From Takakia lepidozioides (lineage: Eukaryota; Plantae; Bryophyta): a stretch of 64,000 nt of DNA. Below the pieces are notes generated by a model. That model was not told the DNA's origin. It made no database searches and was given only the letters and a program-made list of their open reading frames with translations. The first letter of the stretch is position 1. Each line of letters begins with the position of its first letter. Positions 5,111 through 46,482 of this stretch are shown piece after piece. The translations under genes were made by a program, and so were the position numbers. The stretch spans positions 46,996,001 through 47,060,000 of the forward strand of contig CM060734.1 of the NCBI GenBank assembly GCA_030704615.1, written 5' to 3'.

Positions 5111-5112
<2 letters not shown>

Positions 5113-5176
<64 letters not shown>

Positions 5177-5252: not shown

Positions 5253-5285
<33 letters not shown>
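5113..5285. repeat. (GA)n microsatellite plus poly-G and poly-C tracts
   Basis: Directly visible; another (GA)n lies at about 318-347. Confidence 0.95.
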
Positions 5286-5399
5286 ACCTTTTTCTTTTCT
5301 CTTTGTTGCCCCCTCTCGAGACCCCGAGCACTTGCTGCTCTCAGCCCCCGACATGCTTGGTTTTTTTTGTTTTTGATCTGGAATGTAGAGGTTGTTTCC

Positions 5400-8300
5400 T
5401 AATGAGTCCAACTTGTGGGTTTGCATAACAGGTGCCAACTTATGGGGAAAGAGAAAAAGTCCCCTGCCCCAAAGAAAGGGGCGGACAATCCGTTTGCTCT
5501 GCTGGCACGTGTGATGCGCCAGGGCGTCTCACGGTTAACCAGCCCCGTCAACAGCCGCAGCCGGAGGGCTCGTCTGCCCCCCAAGGCCAATACCCCCCCT
5601 CTTGTCCACATCTTGGATGCGCCAGGCCGGCTCAACCAACTCTCCTATTTGGGAGGTTGGTGCTGAGCCGGATGCTCAGTTGAGCAGACCCCCGGCCACC
5701 AAGATGGGTGAAATGTACCTTGGCAAGCACATCACCCGTTCGGGGGCCCGGTATAGGCAACTTTTGGATGTCACCCCCATAGCGACCCATTCCTCCGCAG
5801 CAAAGGCTACACTTGCCAAGGCCCAACGTCAGGTTCAAGGGCCTTTGAAAGCCTCCATTGCCAGCCCATTGTTGTCAATGAGGGAAGAGGAGACGAGGAG
5901 GGCCAATGAAGTGGCCAAGATAGCGAAGCGCCTCGAAGAAGTCAAGCCGGGTGAGGGCTTCTACCTTGATATACATTTGGGGGGGGGAGAGGAGGAGGTA
6001 TGGGCCGGTTCAGAGCAGCCTAGCCGATCAACGACACCGCCCCCTGAGCCTGAGCGGTCAGCAAAGAAGGGTCTGGACTACGGGGCGCCGCCGCCAGCTA
6101 TGCTCCACATCTGAAATCTACTTCCAGTGGCGTTCAGGGAGGGGATAGAGCGGGCGCATCCGGCAACGGGGACTCCTGCCACATCGGGTGACACCGGGGC
6201 GAGTCGGACAAGCTTGCAAAGGTACAACTGTCGCACCTTGTTCCATGATTTATCCTTTCCTTTGCATGCATGATTTCCTTTGTTGTTTGTTTCTTTTTTT
6301 GAATTTGAAGGGGTTATTTGTCTTCAGGAGGCAGCAACATGGCTGGCCTCATTGGTCCAGTCCAGTGGGGTTGCCAATGAGGGAGAGTATGTGGTGTTCA
6401 TGAAGGACCCGAACACCAAAGGTAAGAAGAAGAGGCCTCGATCTCCGGAGATCCCTTTTACCATCAATGAAGGGGCTGCCGATGAGAGAGAGAGAGAAGG
6501 GAGAGGGAGAAGGAGAGAGAGGAAGTAGCGGGGAAGGGGAATGAGATGGTTGTGGAGAAGGGGAAGGAAAAGAAGAAGAGAAAGAAGTCCCATGGAGAGG
6601 AAGGGGTGAGTGTGCATGCGAGGGAGGGCAGTGGGGTAACAAAGGAGCAGGGGAAGGAGGCTACAAAGAAGGGAGAGGGTGGGAAGAAGAACATGCCCTT
6701 GGCGATACATGACGTGGAGTTGGCAAAGATCGTGGTGCCACCGGTGGAGGTGAATCGCCATGGTGACCCCTGCGGAGCGTTCTGGGAGGCTATGAAGAAG
6801 CCAGCCTTCGAACTCGCATTGAGGTGGTTCCCTTTGCACATCGAATGGGCTGATCAGCACTTTGGCGCGAAGCGGGCGTATGCTCGTGAGTTAGACCGCC
6901 GGTTTCCGGGCAATTGGAGTGACACAAGGGTGATGGAGATGGTGGGGCGAAACTTGAAGGACAGGAGGTACCGTGCCAGACAGATCATTCGGAGGGCAAT
7001 GGAAAAGGGGGCCATACCCAAACCACCTTATGGAATTACACAGGTTGGTAAATCCTGAATCATGTCACCTTCCATTTGTCGCATGTGCATTAATGAGGTG
7101 GATTCGATGCAATGTATGTGTGTAATTCACTAATTGTTGGGGGGGGGAGGGTGTATAGGTATCGTGGGATGCACTCATTGCGGGAGAGACTGATGCCGCA
7201 AACAAGGCCAAATTTGACTGGGCACGCAAAGCAACAACAGTCCGCCTTGACAAGCACGAATCCACACACAAGTGGGGCGCCGGCGGATCCAAGGGTTTTC
7301 GATGATGGAGCCAGAAAGAAGACATAACAAAATCCATAGGGAAATACGACTTACAAATCGCAAGCGCGAAAAATTGACTTTAATTTGTGGCATGTGTAGC
7401 AACGCGCGCTTGAGAGGAAGCCATCTCCGGTAGAGTAAACTACGCCAAGGAGCATGGTTGATAATCCCTCATGAAGAACATGGCCAACACGGAGGGAATG
7501 AGTGCACTATATGGCATTAGTATGGCTGAGGTCGGGGGTCATGGCCAGGGATTGGATGAGAGCTCTGTGGGACTTAGGGGAACGCCGCCTCATTTAGGTG
7601 CTCTGGCAAAGGGCGCGGAGTCATCAGGCTCATCGAATAGCTTTGAGTCATCCACTGAGGATGAGGATAAGGATGACTAATCCTAGTCCATGTAGGTCCC
7701 AGGGTCAGCCTACTGAACCCTTGTGAGCTTTTCAGCTCAGTTCCTGTAAATATATTTCCATCTTTTCATCTTCCATCTTATTCATGTGTCGCACCGTCCT
7801 CACCCTCGATTCATGCTTGCTCAATTGTGTACCTGCTAAATCAGATATATGGAACTGTAAGGTCTCCCATTCCCAAAAAAAAAAAAAAGGCAAAAACAAA
7901 AAACCACCCCCAATTCACCCCAAAATCAACCCTCAACCCCCCCCACCAGGCTGCCCTCGCGACTGCAGGACGTCGCCAATGGCAACGTGCTTTTTTTGCC
8001 ACGCCCAATAGTCGCTTGGCGTACCACCCGGCTTACGCCACGAGTTTTTGGGTTTTAGGATGGGACTCCCGGGCAGGTTAGAAAAAAAAGGGGATGTGAC
8101 GCTGCGCCGGTGCCCCTACCAACGCCGTCGGCTGGAGGGCCGCGATGGCGAGACGTCGCTCGACGGAGGCCCCTGCCATCGGCACGAACGGCCTGAAAAG
8201 CGACGTCCGGCAGTCGCGGGAGTTGGGGCGGGGGCTTGCGACCCCCATACGTTGCATTTTTGTGACGTCATTTTGGCGACGCCCATGCGACTGCCGGGCA

Positions 8301-19470: not shown

Positions 19471-21207
19471 CAGGTTTGAGGAACTCCTGGTATGCTCGGG
19501 TGGACAGTTTATTTCAACGCAACGGATTCTCTACTGCTTCCCTATTACCAATGAATCCAGATGAGGTGGACATCACATCCAGACATGACCGCAACAGACT
19601 CATTAGGAGAGAGCTTATCGAATTACATGTCAAGAGAACTTGGAAGCTCCCAATCTCACGACAAAGCTCCACTTCTATCGAGAGGCATTCTTGGTGCTTC
19701 GAGATGATAGAATCTTGAGGCCAAATTACCTCTCAGCATTCTTATCTCCTTCCCTCTTGAGCGCATTGGGGCGGTTCAAGGTGGGTTCCCACAACCTACG
19801 GATAGATTGTACTCATAAGACGTTGTTTGCCGTAGCCTTCTGGCCATTGACCCCGCTCCCAGTTTGAGCGGGAACAAAAGGGACAGAACCTACTTCTGTC
19901 AGGGGCTGACATTGGTAGTAAGACTTACCTCCATATAAAGAATTAATCCGGGTTTTCCAGATATCCTCTAGAAATCCCTTCACACAAGCATCAATCTGTT
20001 GTGTGTGATTTGCCCAAAAACTAGGCCTCAGGAGGGCCTGGGCTTTTGGCTCAGCCTCTAGAGTTTCAAAGTTGGTAAACAGGGGTACAGGCACAATTCC
20101 CTTAATAGATTTGAAGAGAGCGTCTCTTTGGTGAGAGAACCCCGGACAGTGTATCCGAAAATGAATACTATCTTTAGATTGCCCACACAACGGGCAATTG
20201 CACTCTCCCTTTCCTCTCTGCTTCTGTTTGCTGTTCAAAGGTAGGCTTCCTGCCCTAAGTTTAAATTTCAGTCTAGTGCCGAGAGTGGGTAGATCCTTGA
20301 GGTCATCCAAGATATCCTCCCCCATATCACAGACTGGAAACAAGTTCAGGGAAGTATTCTGCCTAACTTCATTTTCATCAGACATGGCTGAGGACACTAC
20401 AGCCTCTAAGTCAGATTTATCCAGCAGGGTCAAGACTTGCGGATCCAGGTCCAGGTCCTTGAGGATCTCTTCTACTCTCTTCTGCCAGGACTTAGCCTGT
20501 TTGACAGGGTGGTCCTGTTTCCAAGATATAGAGTCGATTAACTTAGGATATCTGGTGTTGGGCATATGTTGCAGCTGACCCCACCGTCTGACATCTCGTC
20601 GGGAGCTTAAGGACGGAATGCCAAACTCACCCCGAACAGCCACATTGGCTGTTTTGGAGCATGCTGACATACACTCCTTAACCACCCCCACTTGAATGGA
20701 TTCTAGAGACTTAGCCTGGTTGGAGTTATCAACCCATATAGCAGATCCGTACTCCGAGACAGGTCTAATAACGCGACAAAGCATGGTTTTCTTAACCTCA
20801 GAGTTGACCCCTCTGCAGTGGAAAAACTACGGATAGAGACTGGTAGATGGGAAAACCTGCAACGGGAGGACTGCCTATGTCCAGCTTGCATAGGGCGCAG
20901 CCAGGAAATTGAAACTGAAGAACACTTTTCTTCTACTGCCCTCTATACTACGAGATCCGTGGGAGATTCCACTATTTATTCAGTGGAACCCAATCTCTCA
21001 CTGAAGTCTTCCACTATGAGGAATCAGAAATGCTTGGCAACCTACCTGCACGAGGCCTTCACCCTAAGACAATCACTAGAACATTAGTTCTTATTCTTGG
21101 GTTCTGGTTTTGTTCCTCTCGAGATCATGTTTTCTTCCATTTTGTCCCATAAGCTCTATCAGCTTTCCGCGGGCGTTATAAAGCAGCATTTCATTTCATT
21201 TCATTTC
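19470..21207 (+). mobile_element. 3' fragment of LINE family B (RTE-X-like), interrupted by a family A copy
   Basis: RFKVGSHNLRI|ETGRW..REDCLCPAC..ETEEHF reconstitutes across the insertion; ends in (CATTT)n. Confidence 0.8.
19807..20826 (-). mobile_element. 5'-truncated LINE family A copy with open 323-aa C-terminal frame
   Basis: ORF 19813-20784 (IRPVSEYGSAIW; VRGEFG; CPLC..DSIHF.IHCP). 11-bp TSD CTACGGATAGA at 19796-19806 and 20827-20837. Confidence 0.9.
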
Positions 21208-21739: not shown

Positions 21740-24700
21740 TAATTGTTGGGCAGCTCACACACAACAAACTGATGCTTGTGTGAAGGGGTTTTCGGAGAAA
21801 ATCAGGAAAGCGGCCAGGAATTGTTTATACCACTTGAGGTAGGTCCACCTAGTGGAGTCTCGTAGTGTCTGTCGCTCTTTTTGCCCAAACTCGACACGGG
21901 GCCTATGGCCACAAGGCTACGACAAACATATTCATCAATTCTTACGGCATAGAAATTGGGCAGATTATGAAACTGGAAGGGACTAAGCTTAGTGGTGCAA
22001 GTGGACCTTATAATTGGACACCCTTACACACACTGTGTAGCCTTCAGAGATGGGTGGAGGGGACTTGCTGCTGACAACCACATGGAGATGGAAGATAGTC
22101 TTCAAGTGTTCCCGCCGATTAGAAAGTCGGAGCTTTCAGTCAAGCTGTATGACATAAAAACTAGTGTGCAAAAGATGAGCGCTCTCACAACTCAACAATA
22201 CTGGAATTTTTGATGCCCCGGGGAAAAAGTCGAAGTCGAGGTGTCACATCTTCCATCTTCAAGTCGTTGTCAGTGGCAAATTGCTGCCATCCACCTTTAA
22301 AGGCTTCGCAAATGCTAGGGCGTTCAATCGCTACGTGCCATGCTTGACCACTAGACTCCTACAATTTTGCAGGTTACCCAATCTCTAGTCTTTGTCGTAA
22401 GCATTGATAAACGTGTTTACCGAAGCCTAAGCATTGAACGTGTTTACCGAAGACCTCGGTACGTTTTCTTAATTCGAGCTTCCACCAGCAACCTTCTTTT
22501 CAATGCGAGTTCACTCGTTGTCGATCCTTCCACTAAACTTGTCGAGCAATTGCGCCTTCCCGCACTCTTGTTGAACGACAAAGCTATTTCAGGTCAGAAT
22601 CCCCTCATAGTGTCTGTTTGCTCTTGTTCTGCCCAAACCTCAGGGGCCTATGGCCACAAGGCTACAACAAACACATTAATCAAGGCTTAAAGAAATTGGG
22701 TAGACTGCAAAACTACAAGGACCTAGTGGCCACAAGGCTACGTTTCTTCATTCGGGCTTCCACCAGCAACCTTTTTTTACGAGTTGAATGGTCGATTCTT
22801 CCGCTACACTTGTCGAGCAATTGCACCTTCCTGCACTCTTGTCCAACTCCAAAGCTATTCTGGGTCTGAATGGAGATCTGCAAAAAGGTTGCTGGTGGAA
22901 GCCCAAATGAAGAAACGTAACGTAATTATAATATTATTATTACGTTTCTTCATTCGGGCTTCCACCAGCAACCTTTTTTTACGAGTTGAGTGGTCGATCC
23001 TCTGCTATACTTGTCGAGCAATTGCACCTTCCTACACTCTTGTCCAACTCCAAGCTATTTTAGGTCTGAATGGAGAGAAACAATTTCTTCAGTATCTGTG
23101 TGCAAGCTTCTGCTTTCCCTTGTAGCATTAGAGAAACTTGACAAGCAACAACTCATTCCTTCAGTCACAAATCTTCACGTAGGTAATCACTACCTATAAC
23201 CTCCTATAACATGCCCGAGAGAATTTGCCAAATATGAAGCTTGCCTAACGTAGAGCATACTAACAAACATGCTAGGTACATTCTTAGAGCCTTTGGCATG
23301 CTGATTATTCAGTCTAAAGTCACCACTCTCAGATATTCCAAACTTGAATCTCCTAGGGCCGTTCTCAAAAGTCAGCAGCCATGGTGAGAGAGAAGATGGA
23401 GACCAAATTCATAAGGGAAACATAGTTGACAGACAACACATATTAGAACATCTGTATCGAAAGTTTTACTGATTCATCACTGGTAAGAGCATGAGGCTAC
23501 TGCACGCACACCTGAGCCATACCAGATCAACACTCAACCACCATATGATCCAGCTACCCGAGCCCTCTTGAAGGAGCTACAGGTGTTACTGCCCTCATCA
23601 GCTCCTCATCTGTACTACAACACAACATCCTGTTACCAAGTACTCGACATTAGCTCAACCCTTCAGACACGTTACTCTAAAAGTAATCACCTTACAAGAA
23701 AGAGGATATACAGGTGTTGACCTATACTTGGTGTGACCTTGCCTCAATAGCCCTTCCTATGCAGAAATCATCCAAATTTGCTTTCTTAAGTTGGCCAAAG
23801 GCAATTAACCTATAGAGCCTAATTCCTTCTGTTGCAAAACTTGTGCATCCACATTCACCTCCACATGGCACACTCATGTCACAACCCCCATTCCTTTCAT
23901 TCACACTTATGTTCCTCTGTTCCTCCCTCAAATGTTTGCAAATTGCTCTAGATAATACCAAGATATAAATGGTTCAGGTCTCTGGACAAAGGAAGTACCT
24001 CCTTTACACCCCGCCCCCTCACCACCCGCTCTCTCTCATATAAAGCACCATTCATTTATCTCTCTCTTATAGCTCAAAGATTGTCGGAGCAATTTAACAA
24101 AGAACTAGGCACAAAACTTCTCAAAAATTGTTTCCAGTCTATATCCACTTTTCTGTATCCACAATCTCTAGGGTACTCTCATTAGAGAGTGGTGGGTACA
24201 TGAAGAACATGTACTCCTGGCACCTCTATTCAAAAACTTTCAAAATCTTGATCACTGAGATGACCCTAAAGCCTGCCCTAGTGTTGCAATCTACAAGTTT
24301 GCTGGGCCTTCTAGAGGAAATGTCGAAAGCCAGAACAAATTGTTCATATTGCCTAAGTCCTCCTACTAGAGTGAGCCCCTCACAAAGGTATTGTCTCTTC
24401 CCTTAATTTGTTCTGCCCAAGCTAGGTGTGGGTCTATGGCCACATAGCTATGGCAGCCAAAGTCTTCTGAGTACATTCTCCCCTCTCCCTCTCTCAGGTC
24501 GCCCTTCCACAATAGGAACCAATTAAGAGTGGGACATTAAAGTTTTACCTTGACTAGATCATTCAGAAGAATTCCAATGTGGAGACCAATGGAAATTTTC
24601 AGCAGCTGTGCCAAAAGTGTTGTCTGTACCCTCCCTTGTACCTTCCACTTTCCACACCACTATTTTATTAGTCCGCACATATGTACATTTTTCAAGAGTA

Positions 24701-27071
24701 TGCGCACACATAGTTGAATACTTACACAACTGCATGCTTGCTATTGGGCTTGTGTGGGGCAGTCGCATACCACAACAAAGGGAGCAGGGTGGAGAGACAC
24801 AGATGCATGTGGTATACATCAGAATGCCAATCCACCTCCAGCAGCAAAGGCCCAATTGGCACGGATATATGAAAGGCCCCCTGCAATTAACAGCGCAATC
24901 CGCTATATCGCCCTGACCAGAAGAGGGTGGTTTGTGACGTATCCGACCTTGTCCAAATGCCAGTCCTGACAGTCCCGTTCCTCATGAACTGGCAAGAATG
25001 ATCCAACCTATATCCGCTGTAGACTCCTTTCCATACTCACAATTAGTAGTGCTCTGCGTATGATCACTCATGAACAGTTTTGAGGGATCCTCTTTGAGGA
25101 TACAGCCCAATGTTAACTTTTCCCAGGTTCATGATGTCATGCAGATGTAGGCAGGACACATAGAGAGATTACAGAAGATCCTAGTTGCTCACCCTCTGCT
25201 TTGAGACAGAGAAATGTTCCCCACAATTGTTTGGAGCTAGAGACTGCTTTGAGACAGAGCAAATGTCTCGGGCACAAGAGTTTGGAGCGAGGTTTGGAGC
25301 TAGAGGTGTAGAAGTTCATCGTCGCTTGCCCACAAGCGGGCAAGCCCTAAGTGTTTGAGGGATCCTGCAACAAGTGAGCTCTTTTATAGCTTAATATTGC
25401 ATCTCGTTGCACAGGTAATTAACGATAACTAGCAGCTGGTACCTGGTAACTGGTACGCTCTGCATAGATGCACCGACATCAGTGTACTCATCCCTAGCTA
25501 CATAGATGCACTGACACAGTGTACTGATCCCTTATCTCCTGCAAGTCGTGCAAGTATCTGAGGATAAGATAATCGCATTGGCTCCACCAGCGAGACACAT
25601 GTTTGGAGGAAAAGGCTATGAAGGTTCAGGGTCACATCCACCTGCAGAAACAAATCCAGCTCACAATTTCTTCAAATCTGCAAACAGTACACACTGGGCA
25701 TAATTTAGCTGCTCACCTCAAGATCTTTTCCAATCTGCATTGACAGGCGTTTGGAGGCAAAGGCTTGGACTCTCAGATTCAGAGCTACTGTGAAATCGAT
25801 GCTGCTTGCGAGGCGCTTTTCTGTTTTTCTGTTTTTTGTCTTTGTTTTCCTATAGCCGCCCCCTGCAAGCCGTTGTTTCCCGACGTGTCTACATTAATTT
25901 GTTCAGCCATAAGTGGCACATCCATCATGTTTTTAGCCTGAGTGTAGGTCATATTTACCGACCAACAGCTGGTGGCCGGACTGCAATTAGTCTGTGGACA
26001 TAGACGTGCCACGATTGGTGTTTGAACACAGACGTGCTAATATCACGGATAAGTACAATCGTGGCAAGTTGGGAGCTGGCCTGGGTCATCTTCACCGACT
26101 CTACTGTGGAATCGATCTTTGTTAATTAGATGTGTCAATATCAAAGTGCAGGGACTGGTAGTACTGCAACCAGTGAGCAGTCTGTCCACATGCAACTTCT
26201 GAAGTGAGACACGCGTTTGGACAGATGAAAGGCTCAAAAATTAGTCATCTTCACAACTTAGAAAATCTAGCTCAATCACAGAGTGGATATCCAGCTCAAC
26301 TTAAGCAGTTTGGGATAAGCGCAACTTTTTGCACGTGTTGCAACCTAAGTCCATCAACTTCACAATTTTGAAAATCCCTCAAGATGCACATACTGGACAT
26401 CAAGCCCAGCCTAAATTAATATACTCTCCACTATGCACACGTCGGAGCACCGACCAAGTGCATCAGGTTGTTGAACGACCAAGACATTTGGAGAGAAACG
26501 CTCATGCTGTCATCTTCACGTTTGCTTTGTGCACGTTGCTCCAATGGGCCTGCACCGACCTGCAAGAGCATGCTCAGGGTGTAGATCAGCGTTTCTGATC
26601 CAACTGTGCCACCGACCATGACACCAAATTGAGTATGAGTAAGGCAGCTAGAATTGCTCCAACTGAGCATCGACAACGCAGTTCACTGTCAAGTCTCCAA
26701 CCATCGTTGGCGGACCGAGGCAGAGTACACGCGTTTGGAGGGAAAGGCTTAGGTTGTCACCTTCACCACTGCTCGCATGCCGCCCCTGCACATCGCGGTA
26801 GGGATACAGTCATCAGGAAAGAGATCCCAGAACTCTCAGTCTCGCAGCCATGCCAGACTGCAGCTTTGGTTCGAGTTTGTTGAATGGATCGATCGTAAAT
26901 CCGTGATTTTCCTTGATTTATACGGATCACTGGAAGAGATCACACGGGTAGGGCTTTTTCTCTTATTTTCTTAGCTTAGACTTAAAAAAGATCTCAAGAG
27001 ACACGCCCCCAAATACCGAATCCCACTGATTGGGTAATGGTAAATAACTGTCGATGGCAAAAAGTTCAAAT
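21740..27071 (-). repeat. Backbone repeat copy B (inverted)
   Basis: Reverse complement of copy A. Closest to copy C: 23400-27071 corresponds to about 51303-61760 minus insertions. B3-like remnant at about 21990-22390. Confidence 0.85.
22882..22978. repeat. 39-bp-stem fold-back hairpin
   Basis: 22882-22920 pairs with 22940-22978 (one mismatch); 19-nt AT-rich loop. Confidence 0.9.
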
Positions 27072-28537
27072 GTAGAGCAGTTTCATTCGGTTCTGATTCT
27101 AGAGTGGTCCAGGAGTTACTGTGGTCCAGGAGTTAAAAGAGGGGGCCAATGTAGGAAGGCCACCTGTATTAATTAATGAAATGACTGGTCCAAAAATTAA
27201 GGATTGACTTTCTAGCGTGGGCTTTCTAGATAGTTCTAGTTTTAGCTGACTTTCTAGATAGTTCTAGTTCTAGTTGACTTTCCAGTTTCTAGATACTTCC
27301 ACTAATATGTCGGTCCTGTGAGAAGCAACTGACTAGTTGCTTGTAACTTGTGTCTTCAACATACTGGCACAGGCACTAGTAGCGTGTGTCACTAGTGGTT
27401 TGAGAGCCAGAGCCAGCGTGAGTAGTTCTTTGCTATGTTGGGGGTCGGGCCAAGTATGGCAGGTAGGATCAAAGTGGTTGCAAGAGGGAAAGGCAAAGTG
27501 GCGGAGGGTGCAGAGAAGTTCATAGAGGCAAGTGTTACTATCGGCGTGGGTGGAGCAGATATCGACGTCACATCCTTACAGAAAATGGAAGAGTTTATTT
27601 CTACCCGCTGCATTTATGGTTTATGTGCGCTTGAAAGAGGTGACAGTTTGTTCCATTTGCATTTGCAAATGGTCTGTAGGTTGTATGTATCAAGTTTAAT
27701 TATGTTAAACAAGCTTATCAAAAAGTCTCTTGGGTGGGATATCCCGAGGCTTACACCCACCGGACATCTTGTCCACTGTAAAGCACTTCGTGGTAAAGGG
27801 CTTTATACTTTTATGGGCATGGTTGGTTATTGTCTGAAAAATGCCGATAAACCAGGTTTCACAATTGTGCACAGAAATGTAAGTGCCGACCAGATGCAGG
27901 AAGGTCTAGATTTGTATATCAGATACGGTGCGTCCTCGACGAAGAACCGTGTATGCCTCACACACCAAAATGTATTGGAGCGGGCACAAATGTGGAACAA
28001 ATACAAAATGCGCAAGCAGCTCGCCAATAATTTGCCATCTGTGTTACTGAGCATGCTAAAATCCGGTCAGTTTTACCCTTCAGCTGCATGGGTGGTGCCC
28101 TACAAAAATAGTGGAATGGATTTCCATAGAGCTGGTTCTATCTGGAAGGCAATGGTGCAGCCGCAAGAATTGGAGATGGTCGACATTGCTCGAATTTTCT
28201 ACAAGTGCTCCACCGGTTTTTCACGACTTCGAGACCTCTTCTCTACGGAAGTTGCTGATAATTTTGCCGCTTTACCCATGCAATCTAACTTTGCCGGTTC
28301 AGAAAGGACCATTCTTACGCCAATGGATCAAGTCATAGCTACCCAGGTCCCTTTTATCCCGCTTGTTCACAAATTTAGTGACATTCACCATGCATTTTAG
28401 TGACCGGTGGCTTCCTATATAGCAACCTGGAGTAGGTTGACTCTCGGTTCTCATTTCCGCAACTCTTGTGTTACGCACTTATTAATAAAGTTTGACACTT
28501 GACCATCCAACGATTAAAAGAAATCTCAATATGTAGA
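27070..28537 (+). mobile_element. Replitron-like HUH (Y1 Rep) DNA transposon
   Basis: Homology to the paralogous copy breaks at 27071 and resumes at about 28552. Direct repeat ATGTAGA at 27070-27076 and 28531-28537. Single HUH ORF, no helicase. Confidence 0.82.
27435..28400 (+). CDS. Replitron HUH endonuclease/transposase (321 aa; alternative start at 27456)
   Basis: Rolling-circle Rep motifs in order: motif I SVTIG, motif II ERG..FHLHLQ (HUH), motif III GYCLK (single Tyr, YxxK). Uninterrupted frame, no SF1/SF3 helicase. Confidence 0.85.
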   Translation: MLGVGPSMAGRIKVVARGKGKVAEGAEKFIEASVTIGVGGADIDVTSLQKMEEFISTRCIYGLCALERGDSLFHLHLQMVCRLYVSSLIMLNKLIKKSLGWDIPRLTPTGHLVHCKALRGKGLYTFMGMVGYCLKNADKPGFTIVHRNVSADQMQEGLDLYIRYGASSTKNRVCLTHQNVLERAQMWNKYKMRKQLANNLPSVLLSMLKSGQFYPSAAWVVPYKNSGMDFHRAGSIWKAMVQPQELEMVDIARIFYKCSTGFSRLRDLFSTEVADNFAALPMQSNFAGSERTILTPMDQVIATQVPFIPLVHKFSDIHHAF

Positions 28538-29699
28538 CAGAGACAGAGTGTCTATGCGATTGAGCTGGAGTTTCTTAGTTTGAAGATGACTAATTTCTGG
28601 ACCTTTCATCTGTCCAAACGCATGTGATCTCACTAGAGAAGTTGCACACAGACTGCTCACTTGCTGTAGTACGAGTCCCTTTTTATATTTGACACATCGA
28701 AGACAAAGCTTGACTCCACAGCAGAGTTAGTTAATTAAGATGAACCGCTCAGAAACAAATTGGTGCCAACTTGACCCGATTGCACTCACTAGTACAGATT
28801 ATCGTTTTTATGACTGTAAATATCACTACATTTGCAGTGATAAGTGCAATTATGACTACATCACTCTGCAGTGACAAACAAGAAGTCAGTTCTACCATCA
28901 CTGCGGAGTGATAAGTGCGAAGTGATGGTCGTCACTGCAGACGTGGCACCTGCCAACGACTCAGAGTGACGTGGGGTGTAGTGTTGTAGTCATATTTATA
29001 CGACTACAAGGCTACGTGTCATGACTACACTTACGACTATGTCACTACAGATGAGCGCCAACATGGAGAGGTCTCTCCATGACACGCATGACTCCCCGAA
29101 TGTATATGACTACACGACTGTACCTTATGACTACACTTATGACTATATCACTACTCACTACATCATTGAGGGTAGCATGTGGTATATTTCATGACTACAA
29201 ATATGACTCCATCACTATAGGTTTGTACTAGTTCTGGTAGGTCATCTAACACGTGTCCTTATTCAATTAGTTTATAAAACCATTAATGTTATTTTATTTA
29301 TTAATTTCATGTAAATTTTATTTATCGTTTTGATATTCAGATATGTTTTAATATACAGAGCAATATATTTAATTGAATGAAAGAATTTCACACAAATACA
29401 CAGATTGTTGAATGTCGATCATACAACAAAAAACCAATGGGAAAAATGTTCTCATGGATGCCGCAAAGGCTCTACAATGAGCATTCAAGAAGCATGAAAG
29501 GCCACATGGATAAATAACCAAGCCTCAAAGGCTACAAGTCCCAAAACCCAAGCCCACACCGGGGCAGCAGTCCACTAGTACTCCTACAATTGAAGAGCTC
29601 TATTTACAAATCACCATTGTGGCATATTTTCAACTACATTGCATCACATAGTCCCACCATTGACTGGGATCAGAAAAATAATCATTCCACAACTTCTCA

Positions 29700-30970
29700 T
29701 CATTTGCCCCTAGGTCTCCAAAGCCTCTATCCCGCGCCCTTACTGTACATACCCTGCAATCATCACACTCCACAACACCACATGTCGTTCAGCCATACTA
29801 TCGAACACTCCCTTTGCATCCTCATTGCACCCACATTTGGCATACATATCCACCAAGGCAGTGTTCAGAATGACAGGTGCAATTCCAGATTTGATGATGC
29901 CACCATGCATCTTTTTGCCCTTTTCCAGGGCTGCCAGGCTTGCACGAGCATTGCAAACACACAAACGTGATCTGGTTACACTTCACCCCTTCCCCCATCA
30001 TTTGCTCATAGGTCTCCAAGGCCTCCATCTCGTGCCCCTGCTGTGCATATCCTGCAAGCATGGCATTCCATGCTTGTTCAGCCATACTATCGAACACTCC
30101 CTTTGCATCCTCGATGCACCCACATTTTGCATACATGTCCACTAGCCTCCAGGGTATTGTTCAGAATGACATCGGGTACAATCCAGCTCTGACAATGTCA
30201 CCATGGACCTCTTTGCCCTTTTCTAGGGCTGCCAGGCTTGCACATGCATTGCAAATGCACACAAACGTGATGTGGTTGGGCTTCACCCCTTCCCCCATCA
30301 TTTGATCATAGATCTCCAAAGCCTCCGTACCAAGTCACTGCTGTGCATACCCTGCAAGCATCGCGTTCCATGACACCACATCTCGTTCAGCCATAGACTT
30401 GTTGAAAACTCCCTTCGCATCCTTAATGCACCCACATTTCGCATACATGTCCACCAGGGCAAGGTTCAGAATAACATCTGGTACAATTCCAGCTTTGACG
30501 ATGTCACCATGGATCTCTTTCCCCTTTTCCAGAGCTCCCCTGCTTGCACACATTGCAAACACAAACAAATGTGATGTGGTTGGGCTTCACCCTTTTGCGC
30601 AGCATTTGCTCATAGGTCTCCAAAAGCATTCCTACCACACCCATGCTTGGTAAATCCTGCCAACATTATATTCCACGTGATCAAAGATCGACGTTGAGGC
30701 ATTCTGTTGAACACTTGGTGAGCATCCATGATGCTCCCACACTTAACATACATGTTGACAAGGGTGTTGAGTATGAAAACATTTGGTGTGAATCCACTGT
30801 AGATAATGTGAGTGTGCACCTACTTTCCAGCTTCTAGACCTTGAATCATCTTGATGCACTTAAGCAAGAGACCGACATACGTACCTGAATCTACTGAAAT
30901 TCCTCCTTGGTTTAAAGTCTGTAGAGCCTCTGTCAGTCTGCCTACCTCACCAAGCATCTTCACATGCCCA
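29700..30970 (-). pseudogene. PLS-class pentatricopeptide repeat array, frameshifted; no E/DYW domain seen
   Basis: Repeated P-L-S motifs: DVVSWNAMLAGYAQQG, ITFVC..NACASLAALEKGKEIH, NTALVDMYAKCGCIEDAKGVFDSM. Confidence 0.93.
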
Positions 30971-35054: not shown

Positions 35055-35630
35055 TACGACACTCCCTTTGCACCCTCGATGCACCCACATTTTGCATACA
35101 TGTCCACGAGTACTGTTCAGAATGACATCGGGTACAATTCCAGCTCTGACAATGTTACCATGGATCTCTTTGCCCTTTTCCAGGGCTGCCAGGCTTACGC
35201 ATGCATTGCAAATGCAATCAAACGTTATGTGGTCGGGCTTCACCCCTTCCGCCATCATTTGATCGTAGGTCTCCAAAGCCTCCTTCCCGCGGCCTTGCTG
35301 TGCATACCTTGTAAGCATCGTTCAGCCACACTGTTTCAAACTCCCTTCACATCCTCGATGTACCCACATTTCGCATACATGTCCACGAGGGTGATATTGC
35401 AAACTTAACGAATGTGACCCGGTCCGGCTTCACCCCTTCCCGCATTATTTGCTCATACGTCTCCGAAGCCTCTATACCATGCCCCCACTGTGCATATCCT
35501 CGCCCTTCCTACATCATTTGCTTAAGAATAAGCTCAAGAAAACTGCATCAGTGCTCAAGAATAGGTCGCAAAGCCTCAACCCCACCCCCCTGCATTGCAT
35601 ATCCTGCGATCGTCTCGTTCCATGATATAA
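35055..35630 (-). pseudogene. Second PLS-PPR fragment cluster
   Basis: YAQQGRGKEALETYDQMMAEGVKPDHITF..CNACVSLAALEKGKEIH. Confidence 0.88.
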
Positions 35631-37508
35631 GTTCTCCCTGCTTCGGCTCGATACTACGAAAACATATGGTAGCGTGGGAGACAAAAAGAGGCTAAGTCCC
35701 AGCCCTGTGTGTTCACGGCTGAACGTGGGCAACCTTAAAGCAATTTTTTGAATTTTTTAACTTTTTGCACTTTGTGTCATTCCATCGACACAAGTCCTTT
35801 GTTAAAGATAGATGGATGAGGTCATCCAATGGATGAACCCATTCATGTATATGCCTTAAGATGCCATGTGTAGTGATGTAGTCATATAAACATAGTTGTG
35901 AAACCTACTGTAGTCATGTAGTCATAAGCTTCTATGGCATGTCATCAATGTGTAGTACTGGTGTAGTCATTTAGTCATAAGCTTATATGGCACATGTCTG
36001 ACGTGTAATATTGCGTATGACAACTAGTTATATAAACCAAGCATGTGTTCTTGGTCAACAATGTTTGACCACAGCTCCTAGTCATGTAGTAACATATATG
36101 ACTTCATTAGATTAAAATATATTAAAATGCGCCCAACAATGGGTTTCATCACTATGTAGTCACATATATAGTCATGGTTACCAAGGTTTATATTACCCGT
36201 AGTCATAAAAACGACAATCTGTACTAGTGACTTATCATTCATATTGTTTTGAAAGAACAATTGCAGGGTGGCAGTACATCTAAGTCCACAAACTGCACAG
36301 CATCCCACCAGTCGGTGGGTGAACATGACCTATACTCATGCTAAAATTATTATGACTGCACGTATGGCTGAATAGACTATCGATCTACAACAAAAATCGT
36401 AGCACTGAATTGCTGGGAGCTGATCATGTGCATCTATGCAAAGCGTCATCCGTTAAGTACTTGCAATGATTAATACGGCTTTATGGGTAAGCATGCTGAA
36501 CTTACTCTACACTTCTAGCTCCAAACACATGTGGGGAATAACTTCGACAATCTCTCTACAGTGTCCGGCCTTCATCATGACTTCATGAACCAGCAAGTCA
36601 GGGTTGTATCCTCAAGTGTCAGAGGATCCCTCAAAATTGTTACGCATGACCATAGGCAAAAGCACTACGAATTGTGAGTATGGAAAGCAAATCTACAGTT
36701 GATAATGCAGCCGGATCAGCAATCCTTGCCGGTTCATGAAGTTATGTCGGTGTTCTGGCACTTGCACAGGGCCCAATACGTCACAAACTTACAGTTCCCT
36801 CTTCTGGTCACTAGCGGATTGTTAATTGAGGGGACCTTGCTTATCTCCACCGCCATAACTTGAGGTAAATAATTCAAAGGTGTAAACTCTTAAAACTTAA
36901 TCTGTGACTTCATTGTCATTGTCAAATTATATCCAAGCTAGTTCCGGTGCATTTAATAGGCTGTGTTTGGCAACTAGATATATTACATGACCAATGACTT
37001 CGCTTGCAGACAAGATCCATATGGTGTTAGAAACATGAGAGTTTTATTTCATGAGGGGTGAGAGGGGGTGCCAAGTTTGTGATCATCATTGTTCATAACA
37101 ATGTCAACTCACTATCTCCCTGGTCTGCATGATATGCCTCCAATAAGTATTTGTCCAGGCTCCAAACCTCATATTATCAAGCATGCCTTGTGCGACCATC
37201 TCTGTCCGGCATACCTAGCACCTGCCCAAGAATGGCGCAAGCCCAAGAATGAGGATATTGCCATTGAGGTTGAAGAGCAGTGCCAGGATGAAGCAATGCC
37301 CCCGTCGTGTTTGGTTTCAGGGTCGTCCTAGACTCTAGTCGATTGCGTGTGGGAGAGACCGGGGAGGGGCCTAGTTTGGATTATCTAGGTGGAGGACTAC
37401 ATGACCTCGAGGACGGTCCATGTACTCTGCATGCACTGTTGCATTCCCGAGCCACTTCGTTGATATTGTCACCATTTTGAACCCACTGTCTGTTTTGCAG
37501 AACCCGAT

Positions 37509-40500
37509 TACAACAACCCTGGGTTCTGACAGGAATCACTCTGAAAAATCCTTTTACAGTTCAGGTCTTGATGGAACCATAATCACATGGTCTACATAGT
37601 CCTTTTGTAAAAAAGGTAAACCATAGTCCCTGTCCTACAAAAGCCAGTGACTATTTCTAGATTAACCAATTCTAATATGCACAGCACCGGTTATCACATC
37701 CGGTCCACCCAGCCACCACGCCGTGCCTATCTCCTGCATCAGTTCTATCGGATCCTAGTGTCCTCCAGGCCATCATCCTCAGTCCTCTTCTCCTCCCTTC
37801 GTGTCTGCCAGAACCGCCGCTCTTTCTTCGTGTACAGGTGACCTTCACCACCTGTTGACCTCCTTGGCAGGTGATCAGTACTCAAAACTGGCAGTTGTCT
37901 CTCCAAACCTTCACGTGATGCATCATGGATACAACCACAAACATTTCCCTTTCCCAACTTTCAACATATCTTCCCTCTCCGCCAAAACTTAAAGGGAAAG
38001 CTAGGTTAGTCAAGGTAGTGCTATATAGCTGACTTAGCCAGTGACTATCAACTAATCAAACACATGTGAACTCCTGTAAGAGGACTGCCTAGAGGGCCAT
38101 AACAAACTCCCCCACTAAAGATTCATCATTGTCCGCAATGATAGTGAAATGGGGAAAATCCAATTGCAGGTCACTCTCTTTTTCCCAAGTAGCTTCAGAT
38201 TCTGGATAGTGATACCAGTTGACAAGATGTTCACGATATGAACGATTTCGAAGGTGTTTCGTTCTTGTCTCCAGAATAGATTCAGGTTCAGCCAATAACT
38301 GACCTTCATTCATAACTTTGGGTAGTTCGGGTAGAATATGACTGGGGTCTGCCAGGTATTTCCTTAGGAGGCTGACATGAAAGACGTCATGGATTTTCCA
38401 AGTAGTTGGCAGATCTAGCTGGTATGCCACAGATCCATAACGCTTTAAGATCACAAAAGGTCCACAGATTTTGGGGACAGCTCAGGACACTTACCCAATT
38501 TCAACTGGCTTCTTTTGGGAGCAACTTTCAAGAAGACCTTGTCGCCTACCTCAAATTCACCTTAGACAATGGCGTGGAAAGAGAAGCTGGGGTCAAACAA
38601 TCGCGTCCATAGAGTGCTTGAAATGGGCTCATCCCGATGGCACTATGGAAATTCTTGTTATAGGCGAACTCTGTCAAATACAAGTACTGCTCCCAGGAAG
38701 TCTGTCTCTGACCAACATACATTCTCAGCATATCCTCAATGGTTCGGTTGGTCCGTTCTGTTTGGGGATCTGTTTTAGGATGATATGCAGTACTAAGTCT
38801 TAACTTGGTTCCCAAAAGTTTAAACAAAGCATTCCAAAAGTGACTTGTGAACTTCATGTCCTTGTCACAAATGATCTCACGAGGTATCCCGTGGATCCGA
38901 AAGATTTCTTTCATGAACAGTGAAGCCACCTCAAGGGCAGTGACTGTCATTTTTGTGGGAATCAAGTGTGCTGTCTTTGACAGTCTATCAGCAACCACCA
39001 TTATGCTATTATGTCCATTTCTGGTCCGTGGCAGTGCTACTATAAAATCCATACTTATCGATTCCCAGTTTCCACTGGGAATACTTAGTGGTTGTAATAA
39101 TCTTGGAGGACGTATCCTTTCTAATTTCGAGACTTGACATGGAAAGCATCTATCCACATACTCTTTGATCTGTCTCTTCATTCCTGGCCAGAAATATTGT
39201 TTTCTAACGACCACATAGGTTCTCTGAAAGCCCGGATGTCTAGCTATGGGAATATTATGACAGTCATAAATGATACGGAGTCGCAAATCCTGTAAAGAGG
39301 GAATGCACATACGTATGTGATAATATAATATCCCATCACGCAACAAGTATGGACGGTACTTGTCAATCTCATCAGAGGTCCGACGGTCATGCAAGAGGCT
39401 TTCATATGGTGCTTTAAAAAACACATCATCAGCATAATGATTCTTCACATCATCAATCATAGAGACACAACATTGACCATCGGCCTTCTAGAGAGTGCAT
39501 CTGCCAGTACATTCTCCTTTCCCTTCACATACCAGATCATAATGAAACTGTTGAAGGAATTCAACCCATCGAATCTGACGACGACTCAAATTGGATTGTA
39601 GACTGAGATATTTTAAACTCTCATGATCCATTTCAATTGTAAAGTCCACAGGAAGCAAGTAGTGCCTCCATATCTTCAGTGCGTGAATCATAGCCAAAAG
39701 TTCTTTTTCATGAACAGGATAATTCTATGCAGCTAGACTCATGAGCTTTCTGGACTCATAGGCAATAACCTGACCACTTTGCATCAATACTGCTCCAATA
39801 GCGAGGTCACTCGCATCAGTGCAAAGCACTATCTCATTCCTGGTAGGATCAATTAGCTTCAAGACTGGAGCATGAGTCAATGCAAACTTTAGCTTGTCAA
39901 AGCTAACATCACAATGTGGAGTCCAAGCTTCATTCCAATCCTTAGAAGTAGAGTTCTTTAGTAGATCAGTCATCGGGGCTGCAATGCGAGAGAATGATTT
40001 GATAAACTTTCGCAGAAAGCTAGCAAACCCAACAAAGCTTCTGACTTCTGTTTTATCTTTGGGTTTGGGCCATTCGGCCACAGCCTGAATCTTCTTTGAA
40101 TCAATGGACACTCTATCCTTTGAGATATGAAATCCCAAATAGTCCATATGATCTACAAAGAACTCACATTTACTCTTCTTTGCAAACAGACGATTCTGCC
40201 TTAAGATATCCAAGACCATTCTCAAATGTTGTTCATGCTCTTCTTCTGTTTTAGAAAATTTCAGGATGTCATCCATGAAGACAAGAACCATCTTGCCAAG
40301 GTATTTTCGAAACAGAGAGTTCATCAAGTGCATGAACGTAGCCAGAGCATTGGTAAGTCCAAATGGCATTTCCGTATATTCATAATGGCCAAAGCGTGAT
40401 CGAAATCCAGTCTTAGGAATATCTGCATCCTTAATTCGTATCTGGTGGTAACCTGATCGCAGATCAAGTTTGGAAAAGACCTTACTCGCATATAGGTGAT

Positions 40501-43266
40501 CGAAGATATCATCAATGCGTGGAAGTGGATATTTATTCGTGATTGTCATTTTGTTCATCCACCTATAGTCCACACAGAGTCTTAACCCACCATCTTTTTT
40601 CTTTCTGAACATGACTGGAGCGCCCTAAGGGGATTTGCTAGCCCGAATATACCCCTTCTCAAGTAAGTCACTCAATTGTTTTTCAAGTTCTTCAGTTTCG
40701 GGATACTTTCTTGTTGTCACATTGGCAGTATCAATCCCACACGCATGCTGTGCATATCCTGCAATCATAGCACTCCATGATACCACATTTCGTTCAGCCA
40801 TCTTGACAAACACAATTGAGTGCCGATAGGGTACTCGTGCAAATGGTACTGAATCAGCCACCAACTCGATGGCATGATCAATATCACGTACAGGAGGCAT
40901 TCCAGGGATTTCCTCGGGAAACATATCCCGATAATCATTGAGAACTGCTTCTGTTCTGACATGTACTCCTGTACTTTTAATACCTGATCCAAACAGACTT
41001 TCATGCACACTCAGGGCAAAAACCTGACTATTTCCCTTACGTGCACATCTTTTCATCTGAACAGCAGACATCAAAGGAACATTGGGGAGGGCTCGAGTAC
41101 CTTTTAATTCAAAGGTTTTGCCAGAGGGTAAGGTACCGCTCACCAACCCACACTTGCAAGCCACCACCGCATCCACAGTGTCAAGCCATTGCATCCCCAG
41201 AATGCAGTTGTAGCAAGCGCCGTTCCAGACTTGATCAAAATTTGCCTTCGTGTGCACCCCTTGCATGACGACTGGCATAGCCGAAAGATGTTGTTGTGTG
41301 GTCTCCACCCCACCATTTGCATAATCTGAGATGGCTGCACCTCCACCTGAGACAATCCCAACTTGTCTACAAAGGACTTTGATAGCATGTTGTGGGTGCT
41401 GCCAGTGTCAATCAACAACATTGTTGGTTTCCCCGCCACCTGTCCCTGAACTCGAATAACATTGTGGTTGTAGGCCACTCCACCATCGACAACTGCAGCT
41501 GACACCCTCATATTGGGACCCTTTCCAGTGGCCAATCCTAAACAATTTCCGAGGTCTGTAATGGTTATGGGCTCTACCGGTTCTTCCACTACCAAGGCTG
41601 CAGTCTGTCGGAATTAGCGTTCAGGACAATCTGCTGACCGATGGCCGGGCTTATGACACTTGAAACAGAGCCCCTTCCTAAGATGTTCTTCCTGTTCCCT
41701 GGGACTTAGGCGCGGTGGATTTCCAACAATTGGTTTCTGCCGTCCCTGATTGTCGTTGTTCTTATAGGGTTTGAACCTCTTCCAATTTCCCTTCCTTACT
41801 GGGGTGATCTTGGGAGAAAATGTCATCTTCTTCTTATTTTCCCCTGCACGAGCCGAGTATGCCACTCGCTGCGCCTTGATTTCACATTCAAAGTTGCAAG
41901 CCAATCTATAGGCTTCAACCTCAGTGTGGGGATTGTGGGCTTTGACCTTATATTTCAAAGAGTCATTTAGGCCATCCACAAAAAAGTCCACCCTGTCATC
42001 TTCACTGAGAGTTGGAAAATAGCTGGCATGCATTTCGAATTTGGTCTTGAACTCAACCACATTAGAACTTTCCTGTTTCAAGGTGAAGAGTTCAACCTTC
42101 ATCTTATGAGCGTAATCTCCAGGGAGATAGTGGGCCAGAAACACTGATCGAAACTTCTCCCAAGTATCAATTGGGGGTTTCCCATGTTCACGGTGTTCTT
42201 TTTTCTAACGAGACCACCACAATTTTGCTGCATCCCGAAGTTGTAGGGTTGCCGTTCTAATTTTTGCTTCTTCAGGGTAATCTTCTTCAAAGAATTCCTC
42301 GAGTGTTTCTAGGAACGACAAAATCTCTTCTGGCTTGACAGAAGTCTTACCCACAAATTCCGGCAGCTTCACCATTCGTTTAATCTCGTGAGTTACATCT
42401 TTGTTTCTCTTGGCCCTGAACTCCAAGGAGCTAGCGTCGGATTGTGATTCGGCCTGGCTTCGCAATTCGTCATGTGAAGTCCCTATGGTTCTTTTCGCAC
42501 TCGATTTCTCTTTTGCAGGTTGAAGTTTCTGGACTTCAGATCGAATGAGTGCACCTAGGGCTTCCATCTGTGCATTAGAGAAAAGCTAACCCTGGCAATC
42601 TTCCTTACGTCGAGAGGTACGAGCATCTGAAGGTTCCATCTCTTCTGAGTTATCGTACGAGCTGCGCCGCACGTTACTCTCCGATCCTGGCAACGAGAGC
42701 TTGCTCATAAATCTAAACGTACTTTTTTCTACCCTTATCGTACACAGGCTCTGATACCACTTACAACAACCCTGGGTTCTGACAAGAATCACTCTGAAAA
42801 ATCCTTTTATAGTTCAGGTCTTGATGGAACCATAATCACAAGATCTACACAGTCATTTTGTAAAAAAGGTGAACCATAGTCCCTGTCCTACAAAAGGCAG
42901 TGACTATTTCTAGATTAATCAATTCTAATATGCACAACACCGGTTATCACATCCGGTCCACCCAGCCACCACGCCGTGCCTATCTCCTGCATCAGTTCTA
43001 TCGGATCCTAGTGTCCTCCAGGCCATCATCCTCAGTCCTCTTCTCCTCCCTTCGTGTCTGCCAGAACCGCCGCACTTTCTTCGTGTATAGGTGACCTTCA
43101 CCACCTGTTGACCTCCTTGGCAAGTGATCAGTACTCAAAGCTGGCAGTTGTCTCTCCAAACCTTCACGTGACACTGCTCCAGCTTTCCCCCACCTGTCAT
43201 TCACACCACCCCATGGCCTTTTCCACCCAGAAGTCATTCAGACTTGTTGCCTAGAGGGCCATAACA
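37509..43266 (-). mobile_element. Full-length degenerate Ty3/gypsy chromovirus (element 1)
   Basis: LTRs 42762-43266 and 37509-38104; TSD CCGAT. PBS TGGTATCAGAGC (tRNA-iMet) at 42748-42759; PPT next to 38105. Gag CCHC, protease LLIDTGS, RT FMDD, RNase H, integrase and chromodomain. Confidence 0.96.
38089..42640 (-). pseudogene. gag-pol of gypsy element 1 (several stops, frameshifts, deletion near 38545)
   Basis: ORF fragments 42205-42567, 41614-42144, 41140-41595, 40625-41308, 39725-40612, 39488-39697, 38546-39460, 38089-38454. Confidence 0.93.
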
Positions 43267-45027: not shown

Positions 45028-46482
45028 TGTTGAGTATGTATGCATACGATTGCAGTTCGCCAGTGAGCATTAGTTACTTACTGATTACTAAGGTGGTTTA
45101 GTTAGTGCCACGTTGGATTAGTTAATTAGATTCTTCTACTAGTTATCTTCATGCAGCACACGGTGTTTAGGTAGTGCTCTTGAATTTTGCCGCTCATTCC
45201 TTATGTAGTTGCAGGCTGTAGTTGCAGTGTACAGTAGCAGCAATGTGCTGATTGTTGCAGTATAATGGAATCACGAAGCATACGTAGGTTAATGACTAAG
45301 AAGGTTATCATACGATGCTCAGAGGTTGGTGGATGCAAATCTATCTATAGGAGTTGATGTAGCATAGTCAACAACAATCAACAGCAATTATTAACAAAAG
45401 GTTATGGGCCCACACAGCGTGGTGTTGCGCAGAGAGATTATCAAGTTTAGAAAGCTACTGTGAGCAAGAGCAAGAACGATGGAGAGAGACCTAGGAAACA
45501 TTGAGCGGTTTTCGGGAGAGAACTTTCACCTTTGGAAGTTTCAAATGCAGGCAGTGTTGAGAGGAAGAGATCTGATGACAGTTGTTGATGGAACTGAGAC
45601 AAGAGATAACACCATCTTGAGAGAAGTTGAGTGGATAAAGAAGGACAACATAGCAGTGAGCTTGTTGTGCCAAGCAATAGGCTGGAAGTTGTTGAATCAT
45701 TTGCTAAGTTGTGAGAAGGGCTTATTACAATACACGAACAGAGGGCTACAGAGAATGTTCATCACTTACAGAAGAAATTTTATGAGTGCAGAATGACAAA
45801 CGGAAAGGATGTAGCTACTTACATTGGAGAGATAGAGCTAATTATTAGTCAGTTACGTGATCTTGGTGATAATGCTTTTAACGATGGATCTATAATGACT
45901 AAGATGATGAGCAATCTACCTGATGACTACGATCAACTTATGACCGCACGGGACAGCGTTCCCGAGGAGAGCAAGACATTGGAGCAATTGACCCTGAGAT
46001 TGCTCAAAGAGGAAGCAAAGATCAAGAAGCGTCAAAATCAGGAAGAGGCTGCAAATACTAAATTATTTTTTGTGAACAAAGGCAAGAATCAGTATCCAAG
46101 TCGAGGCACACACACTGGGAGTTCCGTATACCATGGTGGAGGTGCTAACAGTGGGAGTACTTCAACCAGACCGCCATTAACATATGAGCAGCGGCAAGAG
46201 CAGCTAAGAGAACTAAAGAAACGAACTCACTGCCACAACTGTGGTAGACCCGGGCATTGGGAGAGGGAATGTCCTGAAAAAGTGCCAAACAAGCCACCTA
46301 ATGCTCCGGATCAAGGAAGAAAGGTTTTCATTGCAGACGTGCAAGATCGTGAGTCGGCTTTAGTCACCCGGGCATTCATGGCAAGTTTCACAAAGATTGC
46401 AGCTTCAAGCGGAAACGTGGTGGCCGACGATGATACATTGTGGTATGCAGATGGCGGAGCATCTCAACACATGACCGACAAC
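45028..46482 (+). mobile_element. 3'-truncated Ty1/copia: 5' LTR, PBS, gag, start of protease
   Basis: LTR TGTTGA...TTAACA (45028-45396). PBS GGTTATGGGCCCA (45400-45412). Gag N-terminus FSGENFHLWKFQM, knuckle CHNCGRPGHWEREC, protease WYADGGASQHMT. Confidence 0.9.

Follow-up and report, generated by a model that had tools for sequence, protein, structure and literature searches.

A divergent Replitron with an intronless Rep gene in a repeat-rich 64-kb window of Takakia lepidozioides

Helitrons, IS91/ISCR and IS200/IS605 are transposons that depend on HUH (histidine–hydrophobic residue–histidine) nucleases, move by copy-and-paste or single-strand mechanisms and have no classical terminal inverted repeats. 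The Y2 Rep of Helitrons is fused to a Pif1-like helicase, and the IS200/IS605 elements are prokaryotic and use a Y1 transposase that acts on subterminal hairpins. Replitrons, described from plants and algae, are copy-and-paste DNA transposons of eukaryotes with a Rep-class HUH nuclease (Craig, 2023; PMC10288648). Their transposases share a conserved core of about 230 amino acids, and the two-domain Rep protein carries the signatures SUTU (U being a hydrophobic residue), a glutamate, HUQ and GYxxK and has no helicase, its conserved second domain (~90 residues, four helices) coming straight after the nuclease; short direct repeats lie at or near the ends of the elements, autonomous families measure about 2–4 kb and families outside Chlamydomonas show no obvious target-site duplication (Craig, 2023, PNAS; PMC10288648). 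Replitrons connect to the Reps found in CRESS DNA viruses (circular, single-stranded and Rep-encoding) by profile–profile methods only (PMC10288648). Here, we describe a Replitron in a stretch of 64,000 nucleotides from Takakia lepidozioides (GenBank assembly GCA_030704615.1, contig CM060734.1, positions 46,996,001 to 47,060,000 of the forward strand); this whole stretch is called the window below, and all coordinates are positions within it. The reading that we favour, and hold to be very probable, is that of one inserted Replitron copy which has a Rep-class HUH nuclease as its sole gene, belongs to a clade of vascular non-seed plants and lies inside an older repeat in a nest of transposons.

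The present element resembles the described Replitrons in its two-domain, helicase-free Rep with the full set of signatures, in the short candidate direct repeats at or near its ends and in the lack of an obvious target-site duplication. Its unique sequence continues for 8–11 nt past the right repeat, and 11 nt have been reported at the same place for Replitron-1_aNel. A Rep of about 320 amino acids is also found in Diphasiastrum (325 amino acids, single exon), and the Adiantum proteins span 255–324 amino acids; Replitron-1, however, has two introns, whereas the present gene has none. The element further differs from its published counterparts in its length of about 1.47 kb, in a tyrosine where the relatives have a histidine (residue 124) and in a Rep that is at most 50% identical to any sequence that could be retrieved. 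Helitrons combine a Y2 Rep with a helicase, whereas the present Rep has a single catalytic tyrosine and no helicase; the IS families are prokaryotic and have terminal hairpins, in place of which the present element appears to have short terminal direct repeats. An IS200/IS605-like element was ruled out by the lack of significant end hairpins and of a Pfam match. Both CRESS-DNA virus Reps and pMV158 RepB share with the present Rep the HUH nuclease fold, the single catalytic tyrosine and a helical domain after the nuclease, and circoviruses likewise have HUQ. CRESS Reps, however, are fused to a superfamily 3 (S3) helicase and come with a capsid gene in a small circular genome, whereas the present element has neither, is chromosomal and is bounded by repeats.

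The Rep protein and its relatives

A preliminary description of this stretch, made from its letters alone, had pointed to an uninterrupted open reading frame (ORF) of 321 codons with Rep motifs I, II and III and without a helicase, and all of these features were recovered (Table 1). An in-frame TAG stands four codons 5′ of the ATG, so the frame could not be extended without splicing; it terminates 63 residues past the conserved core. The further claim that this is the only long, self-contained ORF of intact appearance stands in so far as it is the sole complete single-ORF gene of the window, but a Ty3/gypsy element has long ORFs of its own at 55544–60261 (described below). A Pfam scan returned two domains, Replitron_HUH and Replitron_C, both above their gathering cut-offs, with the first match spanning profile positions 2–127 of 128. 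No third Pfam family was found on Rep even at E ≤ 10, neither of viral Reps nor of Helitrons; no helicase was detected by Pfam, and a P-loop occurs in none of the six frames across 24–32 kb.

Residue conservation was assessed in alignments of 48 and of 151 sequences. All of the Replitron signatures are present in Rep, namely SUTU, the glutamate upstream of motif II, HUQ and GYxxK with its single tyrosine, and each of these columns is 93–99% conserved (in up to 147 relatives). Sixteen columns reach a conservation of 90%; Rep carries the family residue at 15 of them, among these all of the catalytic ones.

The AlphaFold2 model of Rep, built on the 48-row alignment, has a predicted local distance difference test (pLDDT) score above 90 in the core, while the first ~27 and the last ~60 residues are disordered. 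The strands (E) and helices (H) of the modelled nuclease (E28–38, H46–58, E59–68, E75–85, H88–99, E111–117, H126–133 and E143–147) follow the order expected for an HUH nuclease, and the second domain is predicted to form four helices (180–191, 200–209, 230–241 and 248–255; pLDDT mostly above 90). The top Foldseek matches in the PDB were the papillomavirus E1 DNA-binding domain, SIRV1 ORF119, the Reps of duck circovirus and vientovirus and pMV158 RepB, with weak E values (0.01–0.07) and, for the duck circovirus Rep, a template-modelling (TM) score of 0.68 over the target. Among predicted viral structures there were 75 matches at E ≤ 0.001, and those with names were mostly CRESS-type Reps of 8–18% identity. 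At the sequence level, neither the single sequence nor a profile linked Rep to solved structures, and no match to CRESS Reps or pMV158 RepB was found, in agreement with the published experience with Replitrons (PMC10288648).

When 1.84 billion representatives were searched exhaustively with phmmer, 803 relatives were obtained at E ≤ 0.001. The matched region was always approximately residues 28–258 of Rep, which corresponds to the reported Replitron core (PMC10288648). The best identity to any retrievable sequence does not exceed 50%: a large protein index gave four matches, none of them above this value, a look-up of the exact product in the collections gave no entry, and a scan of metagenome contigs gave a single relative of 26% identity. 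A scan of viral contigs, which detects close relatives only, found none. In a maximum-likelihood tree (a quick IQ-TREE run on 33 core sequences, comprising the named relatives and the closest unnamed ones but neither fragmentary sequences with an incomplete core nor the remaining unnamed representatives), Rep falls within a clade of Replitrons from Adiantum, a fern, and Diphasiastrum, a lycophyte, with a Shimodaira–Hasegawa-like approximate likelihood-ratio test (SH-aLRT) support of 96. Its sisters are two metagenome proteins from the Joint Genome Institute (JGI), and the liverwort, green-algal and pelagophyte sequences lie outside this clade. Taken alone, this position of Rep would point to a host among the vascular non-seed plants.

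The Pfam domains, the alignment, the predicted fold and the tree together fully support the element as a Replitron, with a Y1 HUH (HUQ) Rep followed by the Replitron C-terminal domain, without a helicase and in the company of fern and lycophyte Replitrons. This is the family that the preliminary description had proposed. The profile and structure searches that it had called for matched both Replitron profiles and predicted the HUH fold; neither a missing HUH fold nor a grouping with viral Reps that bear helicase or capsid genes, which it had named as grounds for abandoning the proposal, was encountered. The element is a new and divergent Replitron from a lineage that is absent from public protein sets.

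Some of the metagenome relatives deserve a separate remark. Nine contigs from JGI samples 3300056810–3300056833 (L008–L016) hold one identical Replitron locus, with 99.9–100% identity end to end, and evidently represent the same plant genome sampled across sibling samples; the divergent tip of L016 looks like an assembly artefact. This multi-contig family (P0302) was rejected as a guide to the termini, as all of its contigs are one locus. The same series of samples also supplied two contigs of the sister family (L006 and L017), and no circular-assembly signature was found in the sister contigs L006 and L007. The sister protein P0285 (L007), called as a gene of 377 amino acids, is a decayed copy that has lost both the metal ligand Glu67 (IGRGG) and His76 of motif II (LRLQ).

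Element boundaries and direct repeats

The element interrupts a repeat that recurs in the window as two further long copies (16858→15814 and 52640→51303) besides a few fragments. Up to ...AAAAAGTTCAAAT, all copies of this host repeat agree. Beyond the break the paralogues run on for 200–260 bp as ACACAAC(C)AGATAGC..., while the focal copy switches to GTAGAGCAG.... Because the host repeat extends beyond the break in three paralogues, the left junction is exact, at 27071/27072, and the uninterrupted host repeat would, judging from these paralogues, read ...GTTCAAAT followed directly by ACACAAC....

The preliminary description had spoken of a segment of about 1.47 kb, absent from the paralogous copy and with definable ends. 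The segment is indeed unique in the window (~27072–28548; blastn and tblastn) and its left junction is clean, but the host repeat is not cleanly taken up again on the right: the continuation of the paralogues was not seen downstream of the element, and the window holds no colinear empty site. What follows instead is homology to the start of this repeat family, now inverted, and the right end is bracketed only, at 28536–28551. Immediately past the last ATGTAG, 12 nt (ACAGAGACAGAG) may be left over from the host repeat; in an alignment anchored at the first base, they fit the expected continuation better than 99.0–99.6% of random 12-mers (P = 0.004 and 0.010, in a post hoc test). If this match is real, the element spans 27072–28536 and would have entered the host repeat between ...AAAT and ACAC..., with no duplication of the target site. 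A later rearrangement about 12 bp past the right end would then probably have replaced the remaining host repeat by the inverted fragment of the same family. Two further ideas about the ends were rejected: an apparent homology of the last 26 nt of the element to the flanking repeat, seen in a MAFFT alignment, which was no better than that of shuffled sequences, and a role of the flanking repeat as a non-autonomous Replitron partner, as its termini are unlike the ends of the element.

ATGTAGA(G)CAG is found at both homology breakpoints, and the direct repeats ATGTAGAGCAG and ATGTAGACAG begin at 27070 and 28531, where the preliminary description had placed them. ATGTAGA is not a target-site duplication, as host sequence accounts for just its first two bases. 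Among the relatives whose DNA could be retrieved, the closest (L005; ENA assembly ERZ25073694, contig ctg131969, 343 kb, genomic) has a core identity of 49.8% in one high-scoring segment pair; its Rep is a pseudogene with an in-frame stop, unlike the open frame of the present element. The gene is flanked by ATGTAGAAGAGCAG (1.1 kb upstream of the core) and TGTAGAAGAC (0.2 kb downstream), which form a 9-nt direct repeat with a TGTAGA core, and the left repeat also carries the same GCAG continuation (ATGTAGA..GCAG). The chance of a repeat of at least 9 nt with the pre-specified motif in such windows is ~0.004. The unit bounded by these repeats measures ~2.05 kb, with a 5′ region of ~1 kb, against ~1.47 kb for the present element. 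Apart from the bracketing repeats with their common core, the two loci have no DNA similarity, and no non-coding similarity to relatives was found beyond the motif. The copies of the sister family (L006, L017 and L018) are 90–93% identical to one another, and TGTAGA occurs downstream of Rep in L006 and L018, both of the copies that reach that far. From these comparisons, the ATGTAGA motif is probably encoded by the element in the lineage of the window and in its nearest relative; among the loci compared it is not general to the clade. As a separate observation, the coding sequence directly after HUQ (peptide MVCR) reads ATGGTATGTAGA in L005 (at 6006) and in L019 (at 4268), including the TGTAGA hexamer, and the window has ATGGTCTGTAGG at 27671–27682; the hexamer at this place is probably a coincidence.

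Between its ends, the transcription unit looks complete on sequence grounds, with a 5′ region of 363 nt, one exon and a 3′ region of 136 nt. The tandem copies of GTGGTCCAGGAGTTA close to the left end might serve as a Rep-binding site, an idea that we put forward as such. Another tandem repeat occupies part of the 5′ non-coding region, and a tandem-repeat architecture common to the 5′ regions of the relatives was not convincing.

Table 1. Features of the Replitron and its immediate flanks (window coordinates)
Feature	Position	Strand	Basis or detail
Replitron body, best estimate	27072–28536	+	1,465 bp; starts GTAGAG, ends ATGTAG; outer bracket 27070–28551
Rep transposase ORF	27435–28400	+	321 amino acids, intronless, no internal stop; family core aligns to residues 28–258 unbroken
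Replitron_HUH domain (PF21859)	27534–27917	+	residues 34–161; E = 4.2e-14; score 53.4 bits (cut-off 28.5)
Replitron_C domain (PF21860), putative oligomerisation domain	28038–28202	+	residues 202–256; E = 5.9e-9; score 36.6 bits (cut-off 27)
Motif I, S33-V-T35-I (residues 33–36)	27531–27542	+	alignment
Glu67, upstream of motif II	27633–27635	+	alignment
HUQ motif, H76-L-Q78, within FHLHLQ	27660–27668	+	alignment
Codon 124, TAT (Tyr)	27804–27806	+	His in 96% of relatives at this column
GYCLK, G131-Y132-C-L-K135, then N	27825–27839	+	alignment
Left direct repeat ATGTAGAGCAG	27070–27080	+	first two bases (AT) common to host repeat
Right direct repeat ATGTAGACAG	28531–28540	+	sequence
Two tandem copies of GTGGTCCAGGAGTTA	27104–27135	+	period of 17 nt; 33 nt inward from the left end
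28-nt tandem repeat, 2.2 to 3 copies, 5′ non-coding region	27204–27299	+	repeat search
AATAAA, possible polyadenylation signal	28484–28489	+	84 nt past the stop codon; pattern match only
Left flank, host repeat truncated by insertion	26012–27071	+	paralogue comparison
ACAGAGACAGAG, possible 12-nt host-repeat remnant	28537–28548	+	anchored alignment to the continuation of the paralogues
Right flank, inverted start (~205 bp) of the same repeat family	28549–28753	−	homology resumes at 28549

Alternative readings of the locus

Several observations weigh against one inserted Replitron copy. At ~1.47 kb the element is shorter than the ~2–4 kb reported for autonomous families and may be truncated. 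Only a single copy was seen, which leaves neither shared termini nor an empty site to compare: no second copy was found in the window (blastn with word size 7, tblastn) or in the protein, contig and metagenome collections, a set that does not include the source genome. The exact 7-nt repeat ATGTAGA is by itself marginal (P = 0.046 in random placements at the same spacing). The sister family has no TGTAGA partner in the 2.3 kb upstream of Rep, the Diphasiastrum locus (L019, 37% identity) has no TGTAGA pair, and a search of both strands found no significant hairpin at either end (the lowest z is −1.8, the rest being near zero or positive). Finally, residue 124 of Rep is a tyrosine at a column where 137 of 143 relatives have a histidine, a level of conservation equal to that of His76 and Tyr132. 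Of the 100 relatives that cover the highly conserved columns, 62 agree with the family at all of them, 18 deviate once and 20 at least twice; the present copy is better preserved than many of its relatives, yet not pristine. Because the near-invariant His124 is replaced, the activity of an enzyme made from this copy is uncertain.

Some of these points would also fit a mere fragment of a Replitron, with the true termini elsewhere or lost to rearrangements and the ATGTAGA pair a coincidence. The modest P value of the direct repeat, the short length, the lack of the repeat pair in the sister family and in Diphasiastrum, the missing colinear empty site and the nature of the two flanks, both truncated parts of one repeat family but oppositely oriented, all speak for it. 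We nevertheless regard a fragment as unlikely, since the left repeat coincides exactly with the left break, a 9-nt repeat with the same core surrounds the Rep of L005 (P ~0.004), a possible remnant of the host repeat follows directly after ATGTAG and the transcription unit looks complete. It is more doubtful still that the locus is a domesticated gene or a solitary relic that has ceased to belong to a mobile element. In favour of this, the gene is single-copy in the window and has no identical or close copy in the collections searched, and its frame has stayed open despite the tyrosine in place of His124; but the source genome lies outside those collections, so that the absence of copies there means little, and the gene is intronless, is apparently enclosed by terminal direct repeats, keeps all of its catalytic residues and sits in a repeat within a transposon nest that has no host genes in 64 kb.

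An origin outside the Replitrons is harder to reconcile with the data. The Rep of an integrated CRESS-DNA virus or plasmid, that is, an endogenous viral element, would explain why the fold matches CRESS-type Reps. It is nonetheless a highly improbable source: identity to viral Reps is just 8–18%, no viral Rep family of Pfam is matched at E ≤ 10, the protein carries Replitron_C, no S3 helicase, P-loop or capsid ORF lies nearby, the viral contigs contain no relative within the reach of a scan for close ones, and the protein is nested inside the plant Replitron clade. A Helitron, or a fragment of one, would likewise be a eukaryotic HUH transposon, but we give this almost no credence in view of the single tyrosine (GYCLKN), HUQ in place of HUH, the lack of a helicase and the lack of a match to any Helitron family of Pfam.

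The transposon nest, a possible mechanism and implications

The rest of the window is made up of transposons only: a pair of Ty3/gypsy elements, a fragment of a copia gag, large repeats and a satellite of 298 bp. Its ORFs include no host gene, and neither a tRNA nor an Rfam match was found in the 64 kb. The best matches to the Ty3/gypsy reverse transcriptase (RT) protein of the window are 64–66% identical. The host repeat that accommodates the Replitron belongs to a non-coding family of at least 4 kb, represented at 23000–27071 (+), 18336–15556 (−), 61777–51104 (−), 49099–50032 (+) and 28753–28549 (−), of which three long copies are 79–93% identical block by block. A sub-unit of ~1.25 kb, which starts ...TCTGAGCGGTTCATC and ends ...CAGTGGTGGAA, is found on its own as well, often in inverted pairs. 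Inserted into a paralogue of the host repeat is a near-intact Ty3/gypsy chromovirus (55007–60774, +), whose 501-bp long terminal repeats (LTRs; 55007–55507 and 60274–60774) are 98.4% identical and which has ORFs of 591 (gag-protease), 593 (RT-RNase H) and 365 (integrase-chromodomain) amino acids, the last two in one frame with a stop between them. The second Ty3/gypsy element (37508–43171, −) has 411-bp LTRs of 96.6% identity and fragmented gag, protease, RT and integrase ORFs. Other features are a satellite-like tandem repeat (298 bp, 3.1 copies, ~80% matching) at 29698–30624 with a related copy at 35059–35391, a copia-type gag fragment with a zinc knuckle (45793–46560, +) and an ORF of 323 amino acids without a Pfam match (19813–20784, −), partly within a repeat that is also found at 4413–5037 (+) with 89.6% identity. 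A GC-rich island at 4000–8000 (0.50–0.52, against 0.34–0.47 in the rest of the first 24 kb) holds several ORFs of 170 amino acids on both strands, none of them with a Pfam match.

If the locus is, as we favour, one inserted Replitron copy, the example of Replitron-1 and of other HUH systems of the Y1 type suggests an outline of its mechanism (PMC10288648). Rep would bind the terminal repeat regions and nick one DNA strand through Tyr132, with the metal held by His76, Gln78 and Glu67. It may act as a multimer assembled through the second domain, which would make two tyrosines available, and single-stranded DNA would be exposed by host replication or by a host helicase. The copy would then be inserted at a new site in a fixed orientation, without excision of the donor and without a target-site duplication.

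In its present form, the finding is an ordinary piece of annotation that adds one more Replitron copy. A bolder and rather doubtful proposition is that the element is the smallest autonomous Replitron to date, a minimal unit of ~1.47 kb with 5′ tandem repeats and an intronless Rep, whose (A)TGTAGA terminal repeat is conserved in a lineage of 50% identity. Replitrons were described in 2023, and what is known of their termini, choice of targets and mechanism comes from de novo insertions in one alga, while the ends of land-plant Replitrons have only been inferred. A compact, single-exon copy with an exact junction would offer a convenient minimal substrate for studying how a Y1 Rep without a helicase recognizes and moves its element, and a terminal motif shared with a diverged relative would be equally useful for the question of recognition. 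Should the proposition prove true, the motif would be the first candidate for a conserved Rep recognition or nick site in the Replitron clade of vascular plants.

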